Shown in pieces: positions 15,999 to 47,204 of a stretch of DNA of 64,000 bases; position 1 is the first letter of the stretch, and each line of letters opens with the position of its first letter. Under the pieces are notes generated by a model that was given only the letters and a program-made list of their open reading frames with translations, had not been told where the DNA came from and did no database searches. Position numbers and translations under genes: made by a program. Location of the stretch: the sequence record PV764938.1; one strand, given 5' to 3'.

Positions 15999-16074
15999 GG
16001 GATGGTGTTCCGGAATGGCACGGAAGCGCCTGCAAAGCGTTCGAATGTGGGTTCGATCCCCATCCATCCCTCCA
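15999..16074 (+). tRNA. tRNA-Cys(GCA)
   Basis: GGGATGG/CCATCCC acceptor, U73, CCA; loop CT-GCA-AA. Confidence 0.88.
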
Positions 16075-20218: not shown

Positions 20219-20293
20219 TGCGGTGAGGACAACGGGTAAGTCACGAGCCTCATAAGCTTGGGAACCGGGTTCAACTCCCGGCACACGCAACCA
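20219..20293 (+). tRNA. tRNA with CAU anticodon (Met, fMet or Ile2 unresolved)
   Basis: CGAGC-CTCATAA-GCTTG anticodon arm; GGTTCAACTCC T arm; CCA; one bulged A in acceptor; U1-A72 and A11-U24 but no triple G-C anticodon stem. Confidence 0.85.
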
Positions 20294-26208: not shown

Positions 26209-26283
26209 GCGGGTATAGTATAGTGGTTATTACTACAGCCTTCCAAGCTGAAGACGCGGGTTCGATTCCCGCTACCCGCTCCA
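26209..26283 (+). tRNA. tRNA-Gly(UCC)
   Basis: GCGGGTA/TACCCGC acceptor, U73, CCA; loop CT-TCC-AA. Confidence 0.96.
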
Positions 26284-30894: not shown

Positions 30895-31842
30895 ATGAGA
30901 CGGAACACCTTTCACTATTACCGTGGTATCATCCACCCCTATAAGTCCAATACTGGAAACAACAGTGTCAAGCTTATCACTGCGGGTGGTTATTACAGTA
31001 GTGCGACCCAAATATCGGTAGACGGTATCAATTGGCAACCAACAACCACTGGAGCCAATGGCGCATATAATGCTGTGTATTGCGGCAAATACAAAACTTT
31101 CGTTGTTTGTGGTCCTGGATTCATTCGTGTCTATAATGCGGAGAATCTAGCAGCGGCACCAACCGTGGTAACACTTCCATCCGGTTATGCAAATGGTGCG
31201 TCCATTGCATACCATCCTCCCACGGGCAATGTGGCAATCGCTAATTTTGGTGGTGGCAACTCACACTATTCGACAAATGGTGGCTATACCTGGACCTCAA
31301 CCACTGCAATTGGTTCGTCAGATATGATGACCTACAACTACGACAATGGTGACCTAGTTCAAGTTACCCGAGACGGTAGCATGGGTCGTAGTTCAAACGG
31401 CGGGGTAAGTTGGGTCACTATGACTGGACCCGCTGCATCCACCCGCTTGGGAGTTGCTTATGCGTTTGGGAAATATTGGGTCACAAGTCTTGGCTCATCC
31501 AGCATTTATTGGACCAACAATAACGGAGCATCGTGGACACCAGTAGATGTAGGCAATGCAACCTCGCGTATTCACTTTGCTAAAGAAGCGAACATCCTGT
31601 TTGCTGCTTATGGTGCCGGTGTAACTTACACGAACAATGGTACTACTTGGCAAAATTCATCGTTGCCTCCGGGTTCTGCAGGTTCTAGAAGCCTTGGATA
31701 TTCCCCAACGGTCGGTCGCTTCTACGTGGGCACAACAGGCGAAGCCTATATGAGCAGTGACATGTTAACGTGGTCCGCGATGGCTGGCACCGCAAGTTTC
31801 GACCACTATGCGTTCGCGGTAGCTGATCCCCTTTTTGTTTGA
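30895..31842 (+). CDS. Asp-box/BNR beta-propeller protein, paralog of 21299-22261
   Basis: SVDGINW, STNGGYTW, SSNGGVSW, TNNGTTW repeats; TAAATA at 30864. Confidence 0.7.
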   Translation: MRRNTFHYYRGIIHPYKSNTGNNSVKLITAGGYYSSATQISVDGINWQPTTTGANGAYNAVYCGKYKTFVVCGPGFIRVYNAENLAAAPTVVTLPSGYANGASIAYHPPTGNVAIANFGGGNSHYSTNGGYTWTSTTAIGSSDMMTYNYDNGDLVQVTRDGSMGRSSNGGVSWVTMTGPAASTRLGVAYAFGKYWVTSLGSSSIYWTNNNGASWTPVDVGNATSRIHFAKEANILFAAYGAGVTYTNNGTTWQNSSLPPGSAGSRSLGYSPTVGRFYVGTTGEAYMSSDMLTWSAMAGTASFDHYAFAVADPLFV

Positions 31843-31883
31843 CGTATTCCGATTCTGTGTTAGAGTGCGACAAAGGAGATCCT

Positions 31884-32642
31884 ATGAGAATCAAGATTGT
31901 CGCATCGCCCGCACCACTGGCACGTGAAGCCCATGCTGAGGTTTGTGGCCGGTACAAATGTGTGGAAGACATCAAGGACGCTGACGTTCTCGTAGTGCTC
32001 GGCGGTGATGGTACAATGCTCCATGCAATCCACACCTATATGGAATACGGGCTGCCCATCTACGGGATGAACCGAGGCCACGTTGGCTTTCTCCTCAACG
32101 AATACGACCCCAATCATCTGGATGAGAAGCTTGAAGCTGCCGTCGATACGATCGTGCATCCGCTTCGCACTCGGATCCAAACGACTGGCGGCATTTGGGA
32201 TCCATTGGCGATCAACGATGTCTCGATCACTCGCCAGTCGGGCCAAGCTGCCAAGCTCAAGATCAGTGTTGCTGGACAGGTTCGCATTGAGGAACTCATC
32301 GGCGATGGTCTAATTGTTTCGACACCAGTCGGTTCCACCGCTTACAACCGATCGGCTGGCGGGCCAATCCTTCCGCTTGAAGCACCACTGCTCGCGGTTA
32401 CTCCGATTTGTGCGTTCCGTCCTCGGCATTGGAAGGGAGCAATCATCCCGGACAATCTGCAAGTGGACGTCGAAGTGCTTGAGCGAGAAAGTCGCGGCGT
32501 GATGGTTGCGGCGGACTCCTTTGAAGTCAAAGATGTTATAAGTGTATCGGTGGCTCCGGACCATTCCAAGAAGGTTCATATTTTGAGTGATCCGGGTCGC
32601 TCGTGGTCCGATAAACTTTTGAGCGAGCAATTCTATGGCTAA
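31884..32642 (+). CDS. nadK: NAD kinase
   Basis: VLGGDGTML, GHVGFL, AINDV, GDGLIVSTPVGSTAYNRSAGGPI. Confidence 0.95.
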   Translation: MRIKIVASPAPLAREAHAEVCGRYKCVEDIKDADVLVVLGGDGTMLHAIHTYMEYGLPIYGMNRGHVGFLLNEYDPNHLDEKLEAAVDTIVHPLRTRIQTTGGIWDPLAINDVSITRQSGQAAKLKISVAGQVRIEELIGDGLIVSTPVGSTAYNRSAGGPILPLEAPLLAVTPICAFRPRHWKGAIIPDNLQVDVEVLERESRGVMVAADSFEVKDVISVSVAPDHSKKVHILSDPGRSWSDKLLSEQFYG

Positions 32643-33003
32643 GCGCAAGAAGAAGCCCAGAGACATGACACCGCACCAGTTCCCCGCGGACGAAATGTGG
32701 TATATTAGCAAGAGCGTGTGGAAGCTCAAGGAATACCGAGAATCTCGTTGGGACACCACAACGAAGATCAAGGCTCGGCTGTTCTATCAGGACGACGACA
32801 TTCCGGAAACCGTGTGGTGCCTACCGGTACCCGGCGATCTCGATACGCTGTTCTCTTGGACTGAGCAACTCGTCGGGCAAACTCACAATGCGCGTGTCGG
32901 CGCAATCGATACGCACGATGAGGATATCGAGGACACCTATCACAGCTTCATATTCGAGGACAAGAACGACATGCTCTTGTTCAAACTCTCGGTAAAGCTG
33001 TAA
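32635..33003 (+). CDS. FKL-motif family protein
   Basis: LFSWTEQLVG...FIFEDKNDMLLFKLSVKL. Confidence 0.75.
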   Translation: MAKRKKKPRDMTPHQFPADEMWYISKSVWKLKEYRESRWDTTTKIKARLFYQDDDIPETVWCLPVPGDLDTLFSWTEQLVGQTHNARVGAIDTHDEDIEDTYHSFIFEDKNDMLLFKLSVKL

Positions 33004-33059
33004 TAACCCAATAAAAACAAACAGGTATAACTTTTTTTGAAAAAAGTTGAAAAAAGTTA

Positions 33060-33088
33060 TTGCAAAGTCCTGGTGCTTATCGTATAAC
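33060..33088 (+). promoter_or_regulatory. sigma70-type promoter of large ncRNA
   Basis: TTGCAA-N17-TATAAC. Confidence 0.7.
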
Positions 33089-33094
33089 AAGAAC

Positions 33095-34010
33095 ATGACG
33101 CAAACGGAAACGTTTGCAGCACAATTCGGAATGAAACACTTCCAAACAGTTTGGCCGCTTAGGGCCGTTAAAGGGGCAGCATCCGCGAGGGTGTTAAAGC
33201 AAGGTTTCCCAGAAACTTGCGCCATAGCAATATGGTTCCACTAAGCAAGCACGGGCCTTCCGCGCAGGAGGTATCGTCCAAAAGGCGGTGCTAAGCGGGA
33301 AGACAAGGAGTAAGTTTGCGTCCGAAAGACGCGCTCATCGAGGCCTTACGGTGTAGATGAGTAACCCGCAAGGTATACTGCTCATGCAAAACTTGTCGAC
33401 CGCCGATGGCTAACGTGTAGTTGATTAGTTCGATGCTTAGCGGCAAAGAGCGGTCAGCAATTTGATACGGAAACGGATTGCAACGTCCGAGTTCGTAGAA
33501 AATGATTGAGTACCTCGCAAGGGGAAAGATACGCGGCGTGTAGTATTTTGTTTGGCGAAAGTCAGATGAAGCTACAGAGACAGCACGTCGTAATGGGTTT
33601 GCGATAGCATAGTGGTTATGCAACGGCCTTCTAAGCCGTCGAACGTAGGTTCAAATCCTGCTCGACATAAAAACGCAAAGACTGTCTCGGTAGTGTGTGA
33701 AAGGTGCTTAATGCTCAGGGCGAAAGCTAACTGAGTCACTCAAAGGCCGCAAGCTGGAGAGTGTTTATAGAAGAAAGTTCATAATCGGGTAGCTCCGATG
33801 AGCGGCATGCGAGTGTCGGTGGGCCGGAAACTGTAGAATAGCATACTATGACGTGTCTAATGCCTGACACTAAAAACGGCAGCATTGGTTGATACGTGTT
33901 TAGGTGAAAGCCAAGCGCGTGGATGTTAGAGGGAACCCTCCGGGTAGCACTGGAACGGGATAATCCTCAAAGGCAACTACTGGAAGCTATAATCTCAGGC
34001 TTCCCGAAAA
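33095..34010 (+). ncRNA. large ornate ncRNA, GOLLD-like
   Basis: ~915 nt without a credible ORF between a promoter and a terminator; many GNRA-capped hairpins; embedded tRNA domain. Confidence 0.65.
33598..33669 (+). tRNA. tRNA-Arg(UCU)-like domain embedded in the large ncRNA
   Basis: D arm GCAT-AGTGGTT-ATGC; anticodon arm ACGGC-CTTCTAA-GCCGT; T arm GTAGG-TTCAAAT-CCTGC; acceptor only 3 bp, no CCA. Confidence 0.75.
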
Positions 34011-34011
34011 C

Positions 34012-34031
34012 AGCCCCGCAAGGGGCTTTTT
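34012..34031 (+). terminator. intrinsic terminator
   Basis: AGCCCC-GCAA-GGGGCTTTTT. Confidence 0.9.
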
Positions 34032-34049
34032 CCATATCAGGAATATCAA

Positions 34050-34310
34050 ATGTCTCAAGAAGTTAACCGATATTTCGTCAAAAGCGATCACTTTGCATTT
34101 ACGTGGTATGCCCGAGTTGACACCGACGATGGTCACGCCAATATCACTCCCAACCTTTACAGTGAATTCTACGCGGACATTCGCCGCTTCTGTAGCGAGC
34201 AATGGCCCGATGGTGAAGGCTGGGACTGGACTCTCGATCTCCGCGATGGCTCCATTTATATACCTGACCCCAAGCATTTCATGCTGCTGAAGCTGGCACT
34301 ATCTGCTTGA
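34050..34310 (+). CDS. FKL-motif family small protein
   Basis: IRRFCSEQW...IYIPDPKHFMLLKLALSA. Confidence 0.7.
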   Translation: MSQEVNRYFVKSDHFAFTWYARVDTDDGHANITPNLYSEFYADIRRFCSEQWPDGEGWDWTLDLRDGSIYIPDPKHFMLLKLALSA

Positions 34311-34352
34311 CTCTTTTGGTGTCCATGTTAAGTTCCAGTAAAGGAGATCACT

Positions 34353-34859
34353 ATGAGAGCCATTGCTAAAGTTTTGTCGGGCATTTTCGGCAATCCGTCC
34401 CCGCTTAAGGTGGTGGAACCAGTCGAAGCACCAAAGCCGACACCTCCGCGGGAAGTGACACTGGGCTCTCTGATCAATGCTAAGGAACGCGCCGAAAGGG
34501 CTGCTGAACAGGCTCGAATAGATGCCGAGCATGAAGCATACAAAAAGCGGATCGCCATCGAGCGCGTAGAAGTTGTCAGGTTCCTAGAAGCCGTAAAAGT
34601 TTCCTTCACCCATGATATCAAGCAGGGGCGGCGACCACATTCGGTGATGATTCCCGATACACCTGAATTCAACACAGCAAGTTGGCGGTTTGACAAGATG
34701 CTCCATCGTTTTGAAATGGACAAGCATCCGCATAAACGAGCTTTCGACAACTTCTTCATATGGGTCAAATCGCAACGTCTGTATGTGGGACTCTTCCGTC
34801 GCGAAGATGGTCGCTATTACATTAACAACTGGGCGGCACAGTCCGAGGATAAGTTTTAA
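34353..34859 (+). CDS. hypothetical protein
   Basis: AAGGAGATC RBS; promoter at 34307. Confidence 0.7.
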   Translation: MRAIAKVLSGIFGNPSPLKVVEPVEAPKPTPPREVTLGSLINAKERAERAAEQARIDAEHEAYKKRIAIERVEVVRFLEAVKVSFTHDIKQGRRPHSVMIPDTPEFNTASWRFDKMLHRFEMDKHPHKRAFDNFFIWVKSQRLYVGLFRREDGRYYINNWAAQSEDKF

Positions 34860-35629
34860 TGCAGTGGATTCTCCAGGACTACGAAGACACCAATAAGCTC
34901 GGAGAAATCCTTGAGCGTGTTGGGATTGCTCATAGTTTTCATAAGGTTATCCCGTTTATCGGCCAGCTCGATCCGGTCCCGCCAATCGATGATCCCAATA
35001 GCGTGATCATGTTCGGCTCCTATAGCTTGCGCCACTATGCGCGTGAGCACGGATTGAAACCCGGTGTGTTCGAGCTTCGTCCATTCATTCACGAACACAA
35101 CTGGCAGCCCCATCTGTTGAATGGTATCGACAGCAAGATCATTGCTGCTCGCAACTTGGGTTCGCTTGATCCTGAGCGTCTGTATTTCGTCCGTCCCGTC
35201 GAGGACAGCAAGGAAATTGCCGGTGCTGTTATGTCGGGCACTGAGCTTGAATACCTCATCAAGACCGTCAATAATTTGGATCCATCCGAATACATCAAGG
35301 GGTCGCTGACTCCGGAAACCCTGTTGATGATTTCCGAACCCGTGAACATCCAGAAGGAATGGCGCACGTGGGTGGTCAAGGATCGGGTAGTCACATATTC
35401 GCTCTACAAAATGGGTTCACGAGTCCTGTATCGTCCTGAAATCGACGATGACGCGCTCGAATTCACAAAACGTATGGTCGCATTGAATCCTGGCTACGCG
35501 GATGCGTATGTGTTGGACGTCTGTAAGTGCGACCTAGGCTTAAAAATTCTAGAAACCAATTGCTTGAACGCCGCAGGCTTTTATGCTGCGGACTTGTTCA
35601 AGCTCATCGAAGCATTTGAGGAACTCTAA
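34859..35629 (+). CDS. ATP-grasp protein (DUF4343/R2K-like)
   Basis: FVRPVEDSKEIAG, KEWRTWVVKD, YVLDVC...ILETNCLNAAGFY. Confidence 0.8.
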   Translation: MQWILQDYEDTNKLGEILERVGIAHSFHKVIPFIGQLDPVPPIDDPNSVIMFGSYSLRHYAREHGLKPGVFELRPFIHEHNWQPHLLNGIDSKIIAARNLGSLDPERLYFVRPVEDSKEIAGAVMSGTELEYLIKTVNNLDPSEYIKGSLTPETLLMISEPVNIQKEWRTWVVKDRVVTYSLYKMGSRVLYRPEIDDDALEFTKRMVALNPGYADAYVLDVCKCDLGLKILETNCLNAAGFYAADLFKLIEAFEEL

Positions 35630-36201
35630 TGTACCGCAGCACTGACACGCACGTCTACTTCCTGGGCGGATATTTCTCCCAATGGGCTCGCACTCCATTT
35701 ACGGGCTCTGTTCCGATTCTCAGGGCAACCTCAAGCGGAGCAATCCTGCGTCCGGCGGGTTCACTCCGTTTCAATTGCTGCGAGCAATTTATGATGGCCG
35801 GCAAGGCTATGGTCTTCAACGATCAGGACGCAATGCTGGCGATCATGGATGCTGAACATCCAGCGGAACAGAAAAAGCTCGGCCGCACGGTCAAGAATTT
35901 CGACCAGGCCATCTGGGAATCTGTTGCACGGGATATCGTCTATATCGGCAACTATTACAAATTCACCCAGCACACGGCGTCGAAGGAATTCCTCGATGAA
36001 TCCGAAAATCGCACAATCGTTGAAGGTGCAGATTACGATCCCGTTTGGGGCGTGAAAATCGATTGGGCTGATCCGGCCATCGAAGATGAAGCAAACTGGA
36101 AGGGCACCAACTGGCTCGGACAGTGCATCATGCGTGTTCGTGAAGACATTGGTGTGCATGGCACCAGCGCGGATCCGTGGAAGCTGCGGAGACCCTGGTA
36201 A
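35629..36201 (+). CDS. NADAR (YbiA-like) ADP-ribosyl glycohydrolase
   Basis: GYFSQW, CEQFMMAGKA, KKLGR, YKFTQH, VEGADYDPVWG, GTNWLGQCIMRVR. Confidence 0.9.
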   Translation: MYRSTDTHVYFLGGYFSQWARTPFTGSVPILRATSSGAILRPAGSLRFNCCEQFMMAGKAMVFNDQDAMLAIMDAEHPAEQKKLGRTVKNFDQAIWESVARDIVYIGNYYKFTQHTASKEFLDESENRTIVEGADYDPVWGVKIDWADPAIEDEANWKGTNWLGQCIMRVREDIGVHGTSADPWKLRRPW

Positions 36202-36701
36202 TGCACGGATTCCAAAAGCGTGCCGTCGATATGATGCGGCAGTGGGATTCCATTGCCAAATCTATCATTGCTTCACCGCGTCATAACTCGTTCATCGACA
36301 GAGCTATCTGGCCGAACATCAGCTTCAAAACCCGCTACAATTGGTGGTTCGGTTTCGATGCCTGTCATAGCATCGACCTCCGTTACAGTGAGGTTCAATA
36401 CCGAACTCATCGGCCCTATGCGATTGAAGTCGTAGGGGTGAATTCCGACAATACTGGTGTTCAGGTCCCCCACAACCATCCATTGATCAAACATTTGGAT
36501 AAATGGTGCTTCTCCCATTATGGGCGGCCCTATAAGAAGCCAGGTGCTCGTTGGAAACGTGGTCGCAACCATAACACCAACGCACACGGAACCTATTACT
36601 TCCGTAACCGTTCGGATGCCGCTGCATTCAAATTCCACTTTCATCAAGCAACGCTGGCAGGGAGTGGCAATATCCTCAACGGCGAAGCTCTGGAATATTG
36701 A
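36201..36701 (+). CDS. FKL-motif family protein (extended)
   Basis: LDKWCFSHYG...YYFRNRSDAAAFKFHF. Confidence 0.7.
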   Translation: MHGFQKRAVDMMRQWDSIAKSIIASPRHNSFIDRAIWPNISFKTRYNWWFGFDACHSIDLRYSEVQYRTHRPYAIEVVGVNSDNTGVQVPHNHPLIKHLDKWCFSHYGRPYKKPGARWKRGRNHNTNAHGTYYFRNRSDAAAFKFHFHQATLAGSGNILNGEALEY

Positions 36702-36732
36702 TAAAGTCGGTGTGCTCTGTTAGATTCTAATT

Positions 36733-37224
36733 ATGGCTCACGGACTTTATTACCACTCTGCTATTCAGCACGACACGATCATCGACTTCCGCGTTAACAT
36801 GGGAATGTCGAGTTCGCGTTATGCTCGATTCAAGAAAAACTACGAGTTTGTTTGGGATATCTACAACGATGTCGCAAAGAAGCACGGCATTAAACTCCCA
36901 CGTCATTGGGTAGCCGTCGATAAACTCAAAAAGGCTGACCGCTATCGTCGGTTCAAGGATGACTATTATATCCTGGAGCCTTTGGGCCCAGTAGTTCACG
37001 TTGACATGAACTTCAGTATGAACAACAATCTGAGTACATCAGCGAGCCGTGGTTCAGTTGCTTATGCGTTCAATTGGTACCAACTGGCCGAACAGTTCTT
37101 CATGGTTAATGGAACTGCGAAACAAGCTCTGTCCAAAGAGTACCGCGTGCGTCCTGGCTTCCTATGCGAGCGTTGGCGCGCAAAGTCGATGAGACAGGTT
37201 TATAATTTGACACGCAGGACCTAA
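36733..37224 (+). CDS. hypothetical protein
   Basis: 163 aa; promoter TTGATA-N17-TAGATT at 36698; apparently leaderless. Confidence 0.65.
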   Translation: MAHGLYYHSAIQHDTIIDFRVNMGMSSSRYARFKKNYEFVWDIYNDVAKKHGIKLPRHWVAVDKLKKADRYRRFKDDYYILEPLGPVVHVDMNFSMNNNLSTSASRGSVAYAFNWYQLAEQFFMVNGTAKQALSKEYRVRPGFLCERWRAKSMRQVYNLTRRT

Positions 37225-37256
37225 CCTGTTAATTGGGCGTTAAAGGAGCCCAATTA

Positions 37257-37949
37257 ATGTCTCAGAGCAAACAGATTTTCCTCCAGTCCCTCGGGCTGGC
37301 ACTAATCCTCACATCTTTCACATACCTGGTAAGTGTTTTGGTCGGCTGGACTCATCCGAGTCAGCTGAACTGGCTCGAATTTTTCGCAGTCTTCACAAGC
37401 TATTCCTGCACTTATATGTGTGTGCGCCAGTCGCGCTGGAACTATCCAATGGGCGTCCTGACAACGTTCATCTACAGCTGGTTCTATTGGACCGCTCAGC
37501 CTGAGCCGGCAACTGCACTGGCTATCTTCAATCTCTACCTGGTCTTTTCGTTGATGTTCGGCTACTGGCGCTGGGGCCCGGATGGTAACCCGCGTACGGT
37601 ATCACGTGTTGAATCCAAGTGGTGGGTCGGCTATGTGAGTCTCGGACTTGTGATCGCCGCTCTCATGTGGATCGCTTTGCAATTCGGTGCAAAGATCTCC
37701 AACTTGGAAATCGGAATCGTGATCCTTTCGGGTGTTGCCCAGTTCCTCTTAGACAACAAAAAGATTGAGACTTGGGCCGTTTGGATTGTAGTTAATATTC
37801 TAAGTATCTACTTCTACTGGACAGTCGGCTGGTACCTCGTTATGTTCCAATACGTGTTCTTCCTGGCCAATGCTTTCTGGGGCCGATACGAATGGCTGAA
37901 GTCGATGAAGGAAGCACCACAAGCATTCGGACGACAGGTAACAGCATAA
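37257..37949 (+). CDS. pnuC: nicotinamide riboside transporter
   Basis: Multi-pass membrane protein; QSRWNYPMG, GYWRW, AQFLLDNKKIETWAVWIVVN, GRYEW; upstream of nadR. Confidence 0.88.
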   Translation: MSQSKQIFLQSLGLALILTSFTYLVSVLVGWTHPSQLNWLEFFAVFTSYSCTYMCVRQSRWNYPMGVLTTFIYSWFYWTAQPEPATALAIFNLYLVFSLMFGYWRWGPDGNPRTVSRVESKWWVGYVSLGLVIAALMWIALQFGAKISNLEIGIVILSGVAQFLLDNKKIETWAVWIVVNILSIYFYWTVGWYLVMFQYVFFLANAFWGRYEWLKSMKEAPQAFGRQVTA

Positions 37950-38158
37950 TGGGATTGAAACGGCAATATCGCATCGAACGACACAGTCACAATCGTTGGT
38001 TCATTCAATGGTCGTGGATGGGTATGTTCTGGTCCTATCTGATGGACTCCCGCTATTACAACAGCAAGCACGAGTTTAGATCCGAACGCGAAGCCGAAGT
38101 CTTCATCAACGATATGATCAAGGCTCGCACCTCGGACATCAAGAAAGTCTACAAGTAA
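37949..38158 (+). CDS. hypothetical protein
   Basis: 69 aa; TAATG coupling. Confidence 0.6.
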   Translation: MGLKRQYRIERHSHNRWFIQWSWMGMFWSYLMDSRYYNSKHEFRSEREAEVFINDMIKARTSDIKKVYK

Positions 38159-38159
38159 A

Positions 38160-39212
38160 ATGCCAAGAGATATGAACGGTCTGATCATCATGACCGCCCT
38201 AGTGCCTACCATTGGCCACCGATTTCTCATCGAAACTGCCGCAGAGGTAATGGATCAGAATTTCGGACTATTGCATGTCATCGTGTTTGACCGTTCATTT
38301 GAGCCTATCAAAGGAAGCCTCAGAGCTTCTGCGATAAAAGAACAGTTCGCACACATGCCCTGGGTGCGCGTATACCATCACGTCGATGATGGGGCTCCAC
38401 AGAACGACGATGGTACCCAGGAGTTCTGGGACTATTGGTGTGAACTGGCCCGAGATATCACTGGAGAGGAAACTTTCCAATATGTGTTTGCGAGTGAGGC
38501 CTACGGCAACACCTACGCAAATCAACTCGGTGCAAAATTCATTCCCGTTGACATCGATCGCGAAGTCTACGCGGTCAAGGGCACCAACGTTCGCCGCAAT
38601 CTTAATTATGGTTTCGGCGATGTAATGCCGGCGTTCAAGAAGCACTTGGCTCGTCGCATCGTATTTTTCGGTGCTGAGTCCACCGGTAAGACCACACTCT
38701 CGAAAATGTTCGCCACCGACAACCGATATGGTGGAAAGTTCCTTCCGGAATGGGCGCGACCCTACTTGGAGCGTTTCGGTCCAGACGTGACTGATGAGCG
38801 GATGGAAAATATCACGCTTACTCAGTATGCGACACAGAAGTCGGTTATTGCTTCGCTGGATCGTCCCTGGATTTTCCAGGACACTGACCTGTTGAGCACC
38901 ATCGGTTACTATCGCATTTATGGTGGCAAGCATGATGGCCACATCGAAAACCTCTACAGGGAAACCAAGGGTCATCTCTACATCGTGATGAACTCGGGCA
39001 TCAAGTTTGCTCCTGATCCACTTCGTTATGGTGGCAATGTTCGTGAATCCACTGATCAGTTTTGGATTGATCTCCTTGAGGAATACGGCTGCAACTATTA
39101 CGTCGTGAAGGACAAAGGTTCAGCAATGTCTCAGTTCCATGAGATTGCTGAAGTGGTTGCGGATTTTCAAAGTTCCACATATAAGGAACTAGCTAATTTT
39201 GAGAGGGATTGA
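38160..39212 (+). CDS. nadR: NadR-like NMN adenylyltransferase / ribosylnicotinamide kinase (no HTH)
   Basis: PTIGH nucleotidyltransferase motif; FASEAYG; P-loop GAESTGKTTL; PEWARPY; DTDLLST. Confidence 0.9.
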   Translation: MPRDMNGLIIMTALVPTIGHRFLIETAAEVMDQNFGLLHVIVFDRSFEPIKGSLRASAIKEQFAHMPWVRVYHHVDDGAPQNDDGTQEFWDYWCELARDITGEETFQYVFASEAYGNTYANQLGAKFIPVDIDREVYAVKGTNVRRNLNYGFGDVMPAFKKHLARRIVFFGAESTGKTTLSKMFATDNRYGGKFLPEWARPYLERFGPDVTDERMENITLTQYATQKSVIASLDRPWIFQDTDLLSTIGYYRIYGGKHDGHIENLYRETKGHLYIVMNSGIKFAPDPLRYGGNVRESTDQFWIDLLEEYGCNYYVVKDKGSAMSQFHEIAEVVADFQSSTYKELANFERD

Positions 39213-47065: not shown

Positions 47066-47204
47066 ACAGAACTTTTTTCAAAAGAATAGAAAAAACCTGG
47101 TTGACTATTCCTCTTCCTATGTTACTTTACTGACATAAGCGCAGAACAAGGCGCTGGAGAAAACGGCGAATGGTTCGCTGTAGATCGGAAAGGAAGAAAT
47201 TCAA

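Follow-up and report, generated by a model that had tools for sequence, protein, structure and literature searches.

The stretch of DNA analysed here (the window) comprises nucleotides (nt) 1-64000 of sequence record PV764938.1, the 469,473-bp genome of the jumbo Sinorhizobium phage Phosso, whose host is S. meliloti NRRL L-50. Within this 64-kb window, nt 33004-34049 carry no feature in the GenBank record; coding sequence (CDS) 79 ends at 33003 and CDS 81 starts at 34050. The feature numbers jump from 79 to 81 across this locus, number 80 being skipped. In a blastn search against phage records, region 33000-34050 gave a 100% full-query match to Phosso at identical coordinates, and the alphaproteobacterial phage proposed as the source in an earlier note on this DNA was thereby identified. 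The locus almost certainly encodes the GOLLD RNA of phage Phosso, and the gene should be entered in the record as a non-coding RNA.

GOLLD RNAs are among the largest and most elaborate RNAs of bacteria or phages and often exceed 800 nt; the family was reportedly described by Weinberg et al. in 2009. They are encoded by phages or prophages, commonly adjoin or contain tRNAs and form protein-free homo-oligomeric cages with conserved kissing loops between subunits and A-minor contacts, and their expression rises during phage lytic growth.

When the whole window was scanned with Rfam 15 (cmscan), the GOLLD model RF02032 matched 33533-34001 on the plus strand with 186.6 bits (E 6.1e-51), covering model positions 1-416 of 416; the gathering score of this model is 150 bits. 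ROOL gave no match at gathering score anywhere in the window, and neither ROOL nor any further Rfam family matched within 32900-34150 at E <= 5. The GOLLD-like identity suggested by the earlier note, which had proposed a cmsearch with the GOLLD and ROOL models, was thus confirmed. That the locus might be a ROOL RNA, a member of another or a new class of large RNAs, or a protein-coding region has a practically negligible probability. Like GOLLD, ROOL (RF03087) is large, phage-associated and located near tRNAs, and it assembles into RNA-only cages whose internal linker is disordered, but only its size and its phage and tRNA context are common to the Phosso RNA, its sequence and secondary structure being unrelated; ROOL and the other Rfam classes were ruled out by the empty search at E <= 5. 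A protein-coding function was likewise ruled out. The longest open reading frames (ORFs) at the locus comprise 65 amino acids on the plus strand and 110 amino acids on the minus strand, and all start with TTG. Comparison of five ORFs with PHROGs yielded no meaningful family match; the sole match (E = 0.0055) was antisense to the tRNA-like region of the locus and was judged meaningless. The absence of a credible ORF, already remarked upon from the letters of the window, agrees with these results and with the lack of any CDS between 33003 and 34050.

Many short stems capped by GNRA loops had also been described for the locus. Eight GNRA loops in 33095-34010 had at least 3 bp closing them directly, compared with 2.2 ± 1.4 in dinucleotide shuffles (maximum 7 of 500) and a mean of 1.6 (maximum 5) in 134 other 916-nt tiles from both strands of the window. 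Loops closed by at least 4 bp numbered six versus 0.8. The elements listed in the earlier note all lie at or close to the positions given there. The hairpin GCAAACG-GAAA-CGTTTGC is present at 33100-33117 exactly as described, whereas the loops listed near 33325, 33370 and 33750 are present but are closed by only one or two directly flanking pairs or lie in 5-nt loops.

Extent of the transcription unit

A candidate sigma-70-like promoter and an intrinsic terminator flank the locus (Table 1). The pattern TTGCAA-17-TATAAC has its sole site in the window here, and transcription from it is predicted to start near 33095-33097. A strict promoter scan reported no plus-strand promoter at the locus because it requires T at the last position of the -10 hexamer, which here is C; the site is therefore treated as a candidate only. 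The -35 hexamer is abutted on its upstream side by an AT-rich inverted repeat with a tandem of TTGAAAAAAG, possibly an UP-like or regulatory element or else the end of the transcript of the upstream gene. The AT-rich repeat motif is not recurrent in the window, where one further exact copy was found (47070-47080, minus strand). In one relative (L103), a sigma-70 promoter matching the consensus at 12 of 12 positions lies immediately upstream of the 5′ domain of its GOLLD RNA, which supports the view that the GOLLD genes of this clade are independent units beginning at the 5′ domain.

At the other end, the position of the terminator makes it probable that the RNA ends near 34032. With transcription beginning near 33096 and the T run reached near 34032, the unit would measure about 937 nt. 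The single large unit from promoter to terminator that the earlier note had recognized is thus upheld by the promoter candidate and the terminator, but the extent of about 915 nt given there has to be lengthened at the 3′ end by about 20 nt. No promoter or terminator was predicted on the plus strand between the 5′ and 3′ halves.

Table 1. Features of the GOLLD locus of phage Phosso (positions in the window)
Feature	Position	Strand	Basis
AT-rich perfect inverted repeat with 11-nt arms, and tandem TTGAAAAAAG (two copies)	33027-33060	+	repeat search, sequence
Candidate sigma-70-like promoter: -35 TTGCAA (33060-33065), 17-nt spacer, -10 TATAAC (33083-33088)	33060-33088	+	pattern scan
Lineage-specific 5′ leader with hairpins 33100-33117 (7 bp, GAAA loop) and 33128-33143 (4 bp)	33096-33147	+	minimum free energy (MFE) fold, GNRA count
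Conserved structured GOLLD 5′ domain, about 13 covariation-supported helices	33148-33532	+	RNAalifold, 16 sequences
5′-domain helices (examples)	33180-33184/33189-33193; 33249-33257/33408-33418; 33428-33436/33443-33451	+	covariation
5′-domain helices (further examples)	33460-33470/33492-33503; 33513-33515/33521-33523	+	covariation
First Rfam GOLLD element (model 1-62): long hairpin with GAAA loop (33557-33560) and "internal loop" (33576-33584)	33533-33593	+	cmscan, clade alifold
Pseudoknot helix, 33577-33583 with 33682-33688	33577-33688	+	clade alifold, column statistics, inverted repeat
tRNA-like domain in the GOLLD linker	33598-33669	+	Rfam tRNA, 54.1 bits
Conserved single-stranded joiner AAAACGCAAAGA between tRNA-like domain and pseudoknot strand	33670-33681	+	clade alignment
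Core of the conserved GOLLD 3′ domain: multi-helix junctions and terminal hairpin (33985-34001)	33689-34001	+	RF02032 alignment to model position 416
Intrinsic terminator: stem-loop 34012-34027 (6-bp stem with 5 G-C pairs, GCAA loop), then T run (TTTTT)	34012-34032	+	terminator scan, sequence

Domain structure and pseudoknot

Since the Rfam model and the published alignments derived from it cover the 3′ domain only, separate evidence was needed for the 5′ portion of about 440 nt. The 5′ half has an MFE of -154.9 kcal/mol (z = -4.9 versus shuffles) and could be aligned to the region directly 5′ of the 3′ domain in the Caulobacter phages phiCbK and Magneto, Mesorhizobium phage Cp1R7A-A1 and DSS3_MAL1 and likewise in many uncultured phage contigs. 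The leader was alignable only to the closest relatives; the conserved core begins near 33148, and its middle part (about 33258-33407) is variable. Applied to 16 sequences (Phosso and 15 related phage GOLLDs), RNAalifold returned 62 pairs, 48 of them with compensatory double changes. After removal of one dubious long-range helix 57 pairs remained, 48 of which were compensatory, with 91.8% of the cells canonical. Sliding the partners by 1-3 columns reduced these values to 37-41% canonical cells and 24-28 compensatory pairs, and permuted columns gave 66% (maximum 69%) and 38 pairs (maximum 44). The structure was derived from the same alignment that was used to test it, which biases the comparison somewhat in its favour, but the margin is large. 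The 5′ half is thus a conserved, covarying structured domain common to the GOLLDs of other phages.

Three further pairings were considered and rejected. Two long-range helices proposed by RNAalifold (33173-33178 with 33539-33544, and 33538-33544 with 33879-33885) were regarded as artefacts, each having one compensatory pair and conflicting with an Rfam helix; in the cmscan alignment the outer helix of the first Rfam element is formed by 33533-33539 with 33585-33591. A loop-to-joiner pairing of 33238-33247 with 33434-43 is not claimed, as its register varies among relatives.

It could be argued that the functional RNA consists of 33533-34001 only, the 440 nt upstream being an unrelated leader or a separate small-RNA region, given that the Rfam model and published alignments are limited to the 3′ domain and that the 5′ end of the RNA is inferred. 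This explanation is very unlikely. The upstream region is homologous and covarying in 16 phage GOLLDs and always abuts the 3′ domain; promoters lie upstream of the 5′ domain, as a candidate in Phosso and in L103, and none was predicted on the plus strand between the halves. Moreover, the solved full-length GOLLDs carry both domains in one chain.

For the region from 33520 onwards, RNAalifold of 36 dereplicated clade sequences gave 116 consensus pairs, of which 91 were compensatory. Phosso forms pairs in nearly all of these helices, with few non-canonical pairs in the cmscan alignment, and its terminal hairpin has the conserved loop AUAAUCUCA. The GOLLD 3′ domain is complete in the 3′ half of the Phosso RNA.

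The alignment of the clade also revealed a pseudoknot helix, which is canonical at 7/7 pairs in all 36 sequences and shows compensatory changes at three pairs. In Phosso it can be extended to 12 bp (33572-33583 with 33682-33693). A nested model such as that of Rfam cannot contain the helix, as the "internal loop" of the first Rfam hairpin serves as its 5′ strand. As the Rfam consensus letters are also complementary, the pseudoknot is probably common to GOLLD RNAs in general and already included in drawings of them. Through this helix the variable linker becomes a closed loop of about 98 nt (33584-33681) that holds the tRNA-like domain and the joiner AAAACGCAAAGA, which is kept in all members of the clade.

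The tRNA-like module of the linker

The internal tRNA domain described in the earlier note is present, but it is a tRNA-like domain with a defective acceptor end and no normal tRNA gene. The module possesses a D arm (33607-33621) with a 4-bp stem and GG in the loop, an anticodon arm (33623-33639) with a 5-bp stem, and a T arm (33645-33661) with a 5-bp stem and the loop TTCAAAT. Its anticodon loop, CUUCUAA, is canonical, with U33, anticodon UCU at 33630-33632, and A37. The acceptor strands TTTGCGA and TCGACAT, by contrast, form 4/7 pairs, three of them contiguous, and the A-rich 3′ tail lacks CCA. The module thus has the cloverleaf arms and the 7-nt anticodon loop of a canonical tRNA but neither the 7-bp acceptor stem nor the NCCA end. 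ARAGORN made no tRNA call for 33598-33669, and the MFE fold of the module has no acceptor stem, unlike that of the phage tRNA-Gly at 26209.

The same pattern was found throughout the clade. Of the dereplicated modules, 38 could be parsed cleanly; apart from one T stem (4/5), all their D, anticodon and T stems were fully paired, and GG in the D loop was seen in 38/38, U33 in 36/38 and a purine at position 37 in 35/38. A 7-bp acceptor was present in 4/38 and an encoded CCA in 2/38, whereas the free-standing tRNAs of the fetched loci had seven paired acceptor positions in 127/152 cases and CCA in 144/152 (95%). Acceptor pairs 4-69 to 7-66 are conserved and covarying across the clade (31-36 canonical of 33-36), and 1-72 to 3-70 are unpaired; covariation was likewise seen in the D, anticodon and T arms (alifold). 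Where at least 20 free-standing tRNAs had been captured, a canonical tRNA with the anticodon of the module coexisted in 7/8 loci. The conserved and covarying arms together with the stub acceptor therefore point to a selected tRNA-shaped domain and to no ordinary tRNA gene. Judged from these sequences, it is likelier that the module is a tethered tRNA mimic than that it is a tRNA gene, and the module is probably not matured into a working tRNA.

According to an alternative explanation, the GOLLD RNA would be the carrier or precursor of a genuine tRNA-Arg(UCU), which would be stored in the cage until RNase P and 3′ processing free it for the decoding of AGA codons late in infection. The score of 54 bits with the Rfam tRNA model and the canonical 7-nt anticodon loop with U33 and A37 are in agreement with this, as are published proposals of linker tRNAs (PMC12286853, PMC12990946) and the relatives with complete acceptors described below. 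Nevertheless, it is considered unlikely. Besides the rejection of the Phosso module by ARAGORN, its incomplete acceptor, missing CCA and acceptor-less MFE fold, positions 1-72 to 3-70 are unpaired in the clade and CCA is absent from 36/38 modules, while 95% of the ordinary tRNAs of these phages encode it. Canonical tRNAs with the same anticodon stand alongside in seven of the eight large arrays. Furthermore, a mycobacterial GOLLD holds an internal "pseudo tRNA gene" for which a separate transcript was not detected (Behra et al. 2019, PMC6582537). This GOLLD resembles that of Phosso in having a tRNA-shaped element inside the same linker; compared by its published description, it differs in belonging to another phylum and GOLLD subgroup and in lying in a chromosomal or prophage tRNA cluster. 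A linker tRNA-Phe in J13/15 of mycobacterial GOLLD is attributed to Morgado et al. 2020 by the review PMC12990946, and for Mycolicibacterium "inhibited storage" of the linker tRNA-Phe has been proposed (PMC12990946).

The module changes rapidly. The GOLLD loci of phiCbK and Magneto (L002:3026-3512 and L003:2526-3012) showed 17 differences over 1151 aligned nt; a run of five successive differences falls within the 7-nt anticodon loop, and six more are clustered near the 5′ end. As a result of the five changes in the loop, databases call the element tRNA-Gly in one case and tRNA-Lys in the other. In two pairs of relatives with 3′ domains at least 90% identical (L009 and L152; L101 and L145), the modules differ at 24-26 of about 65 positions, whereas the remaining approximately 450 nt differ at 8-21 only. 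This contrast suggests a cassette-like exchange of modules between GOLLDs.

The anticodons of the 38 modules were dominated by UUU (11), GUU (9), UCU (4), UGU (3) and CUU (2). The PARIS nuclease AriB cleaves E. coli tRNA species UUU, GUU and UGU (PMC12409363). A tentative and rather doubtful reading is that the module displays an acceptor-less tRNA elbow and anticodon arm under diversifying selection and, as a decoy or sponge inside the cage, intercepts host immune systems that target tRNAs (for instance anticodon nucleases like PARIS AriB or PrrC) or some other factor that binds tRNA. The prevalence of anticodons of tRNA species cleaved by AriB, the loop changes between phiCbK and Magneto, the exchange of modules and the coexisting tRNAs with the same anticodon would fit such a role. 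Shared ancestry, however, inflates the anticodon counts, the anticodon of Phosso is UCU, and a location in the lumen of the cage would restrict the access of a nuclease.

Relatives, genomic setting and proposed model

Relatives were sought with a pattern in which the T arm is joined to the conserved joiner AAAACGCAAAGA. It was found in 50 viral contigs, seven of them larger than 200 kb, and in only three contigs of metagenome-assembled genomes (MAGs) among 185,579 species genomes. All 17 relatives tested exceeded the Rfam GOLLD threshold. The best DNA match outside Phosso had about 70% identity over about 300 nt (blastn against phage records). In the tree of 3′ domains, Phosso sits on a long branch (0.66 substitutions/site) in a group that includes phiCbK, Cp1R7A-A1, DSS3_MAL1 and a Hyphomicrobiales MAG.

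The relatives are found within tRNA arrays, and a phage transfer-messenger RNA (tmRNA) adjoins several of them. Permuted tmRNA genes were located beside GOLLD at L002:2199-2517 (-), L003:1698-2017 (-), L004:3041-3457 (+) and L150:2259-2440 (+), and the GOLLDs concerned belong to phiCbK-like phages, DSS3_MAL1 and one uncultured contig. In a Hyphomicrobiales MAG contig (L166) a 264-nt MITE-like insertion (miniature inverted-repeat transposable element) with 32-nt terminal inverted repeats (91% complementary) occupies 2592-2855 in the GOLLD 5′ domain, and the GOLLD 3′ domain of this contig still scores 166.9 bits. A manA RNA motif (RF01745, 59.3 bits) was observed at L165:5770-5941, inside a tRNA array that also contains a GOLLD whose linker tRNA looks genuine (7-bp acceptor and CCA).

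The 3′ domains of GOLLDs from Caulobacter phiCbK-like phages, Cp1R7A-A1 and DSS3_MAL1 are listed in Supplementary File 3 of Kretsch et al. 2025 (PMC12286853), which also includes GOLLDs of Roseobacter, Ruegeria, Phaeobacter and Erythrobacter phages. Alphaproteobacterial phages were thus already known to carry GOLLDs; neither Phosso nor Sinorhizobium is among the GOLLDs of that file. Both this occurrence and a tRNA in the linker are already published, and no new class is involved. New here are the Phosso member, the covariation-supported 5′ domain of the clade, and the systematic loss of the acceptor end, now quantified, together with the fast replacement of the anticodon loop or module. The GOLLDs of the phiCbK-like phages, Mesorhizobium phage Cp1R7A-A1 and DSS3_MAL1 share with Phosso the clade, a homologous 5′ domain, the joiner and a truncated-acceptor module at the identical linker position; they differ in lying within tRNA arrays and in their anticodons (Gly-like, Lys, Leu, Arg).

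The GOLLD of Phosso, in contrast, is solitary and outside any tRNA array, the nearest tRNA being that at 26209 (ARAGORN), and no tmRNA was found in the 64-kb window. Two low-scoring Rfam tRNA matches in the window, at 20220-20289 (38.4 bits, without an ARAGORN call) and at 16001-16069 (32.1 bits, tRNA-Cys(GCA) according to ARAGORN), may be further degenerate or unusual phage tRNAs. With its own predicted promoter and terminator, the gene stands not in a tRNA island but among genes related to nicotinamide adenine dinucleotide (NAD), as the earlier note had stated. A Pfam-confirmed NAD kinase gene (CDS 78, 31839-32642) lies one gene upstream and is separated from GOLLD by the hypothetical CDS 79. 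Downstream are the genes of an R2K-clade ATP-grasp protein (34859-35629) and a NADAR-domain protein (35629-36201), as well as those of a nicotinamide mononucleotide (NMN) transporter and an NMN adenylyltransferase. The NAD-related cluster around GOLLD extends over 31839-39212 and may serve the phage as a module for NAD salvage or for counter-defence. No sign was seen that the placement of GOLLD among the NAD genes is functional rather than incidental.

The long branch of the 3′ domain, the solitary position outside a tRNA array and an acceptor stem among the weakest of the clade could indicate a decaying relic that is non-functional in Phosso. This is highly improbable, as the model is matched over its full length above the gathering score, canonical pairs are kept in almost every clade-consensus helix of both domains, and the promoter-like site and the terminator are intact.

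Two solved GOLLDs provide the basis for a structural model. That of env-38 is a D7 14-mer cage of 380 Å whose rings consist of 3′ domains and whose caps consist of 5′ domains, and its linker is unresolved but positioned inside the cage (PMC12286853; PDB 9MEE). The GOLLD of Streptococcus agalactiae forms 10- and 12-mers (2026 review PMC12990946; 12-mer PDB 9L0R). Both resemble the Phosso RNA in their 3′ domain, their length of more than 800 nt, the two domains with a linker after the first 3′ hairpin, the GNRA loops and their being encoded by phages. The env-38 linker comprises about 42 disordered nt, whereas the Phosso linker holds the tRNA-like domain.

On these grounds, the explanation proposed is a single non-coding GOLLD gene of about 937 nt with a tRNA mimic in its linker, to which a probability of roughly 0.8 is assigned. 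Transcription would proceed rightward from its own sigma-70-like promoter, starting near 33096, and would stop at the intrinsic terminator near 34032. By analogy with the solved GOLLDs, the RNA would self-assemble without protein into a closed two-layer cage of about 10-14 copies, in which the 3′ domains would form the rings and the 5′ domains the caps, and the tRNA-like module of the linker would project into the lumen. Assembly of the Phosso RNA into such a cage is considered fairly probable. The comparative data suggest that the module would yield no decoding tRNA, the elbow and anticodon arm being kept with an acceptor of about 4 bp and no CCA; most likely, the tethered mimic would engage some tRNA-binding factor during lytic growth.

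Several observations weigh against this explanation. The promoter is a consensus-like match with a non-canonical -10 hexamer (TATAAC), and the 5′ end of the RNA is inferred. Fully paired 7-bp acceptors exist in L065, L165 and L168 (three of the pairs in L168 being G-U), the last two of which also encode CCA; genuine tRNAs do therefore occur at the linker position. Processing by RNase P and RNase Z followed by CCA addition would still be compatible with a short acceptor and a missing CCA. Cage formation is proposed from homology, the stoichiometry differs among the solved GOLLDs, and no solved GOLLD structure has a tRNA in its linker. The published inter-subunit contacts (L20 with J13/15, and the self-complementary loops L21a and L21b), sought in Phosso as complementarity by eye and without the env-38 numbering, gave no consistent register. 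Finally, the homology of the 5′ domain was compared within the 16 sequences of the clade.

The cage structure of GOLLD was solved in 2025, and Phosso and phiCbK are culturable systems for investigating the function of this RNA. The Phosso copy is a stand-alone gene that should allow clean deletion, its host S. meliloti is genetically tractable and non-pathogenic, and a GOLLD of closely similar architecture is present in the well-studied Caulobacter phage phiCbK. The retention of the elbow and anticodon arm, the systematic loss of the acceptor and the fast change of the anticodon loop in this clade constitute a testable functional constraint and argue against simple "tRNA storage" by the GOLLD RNA.

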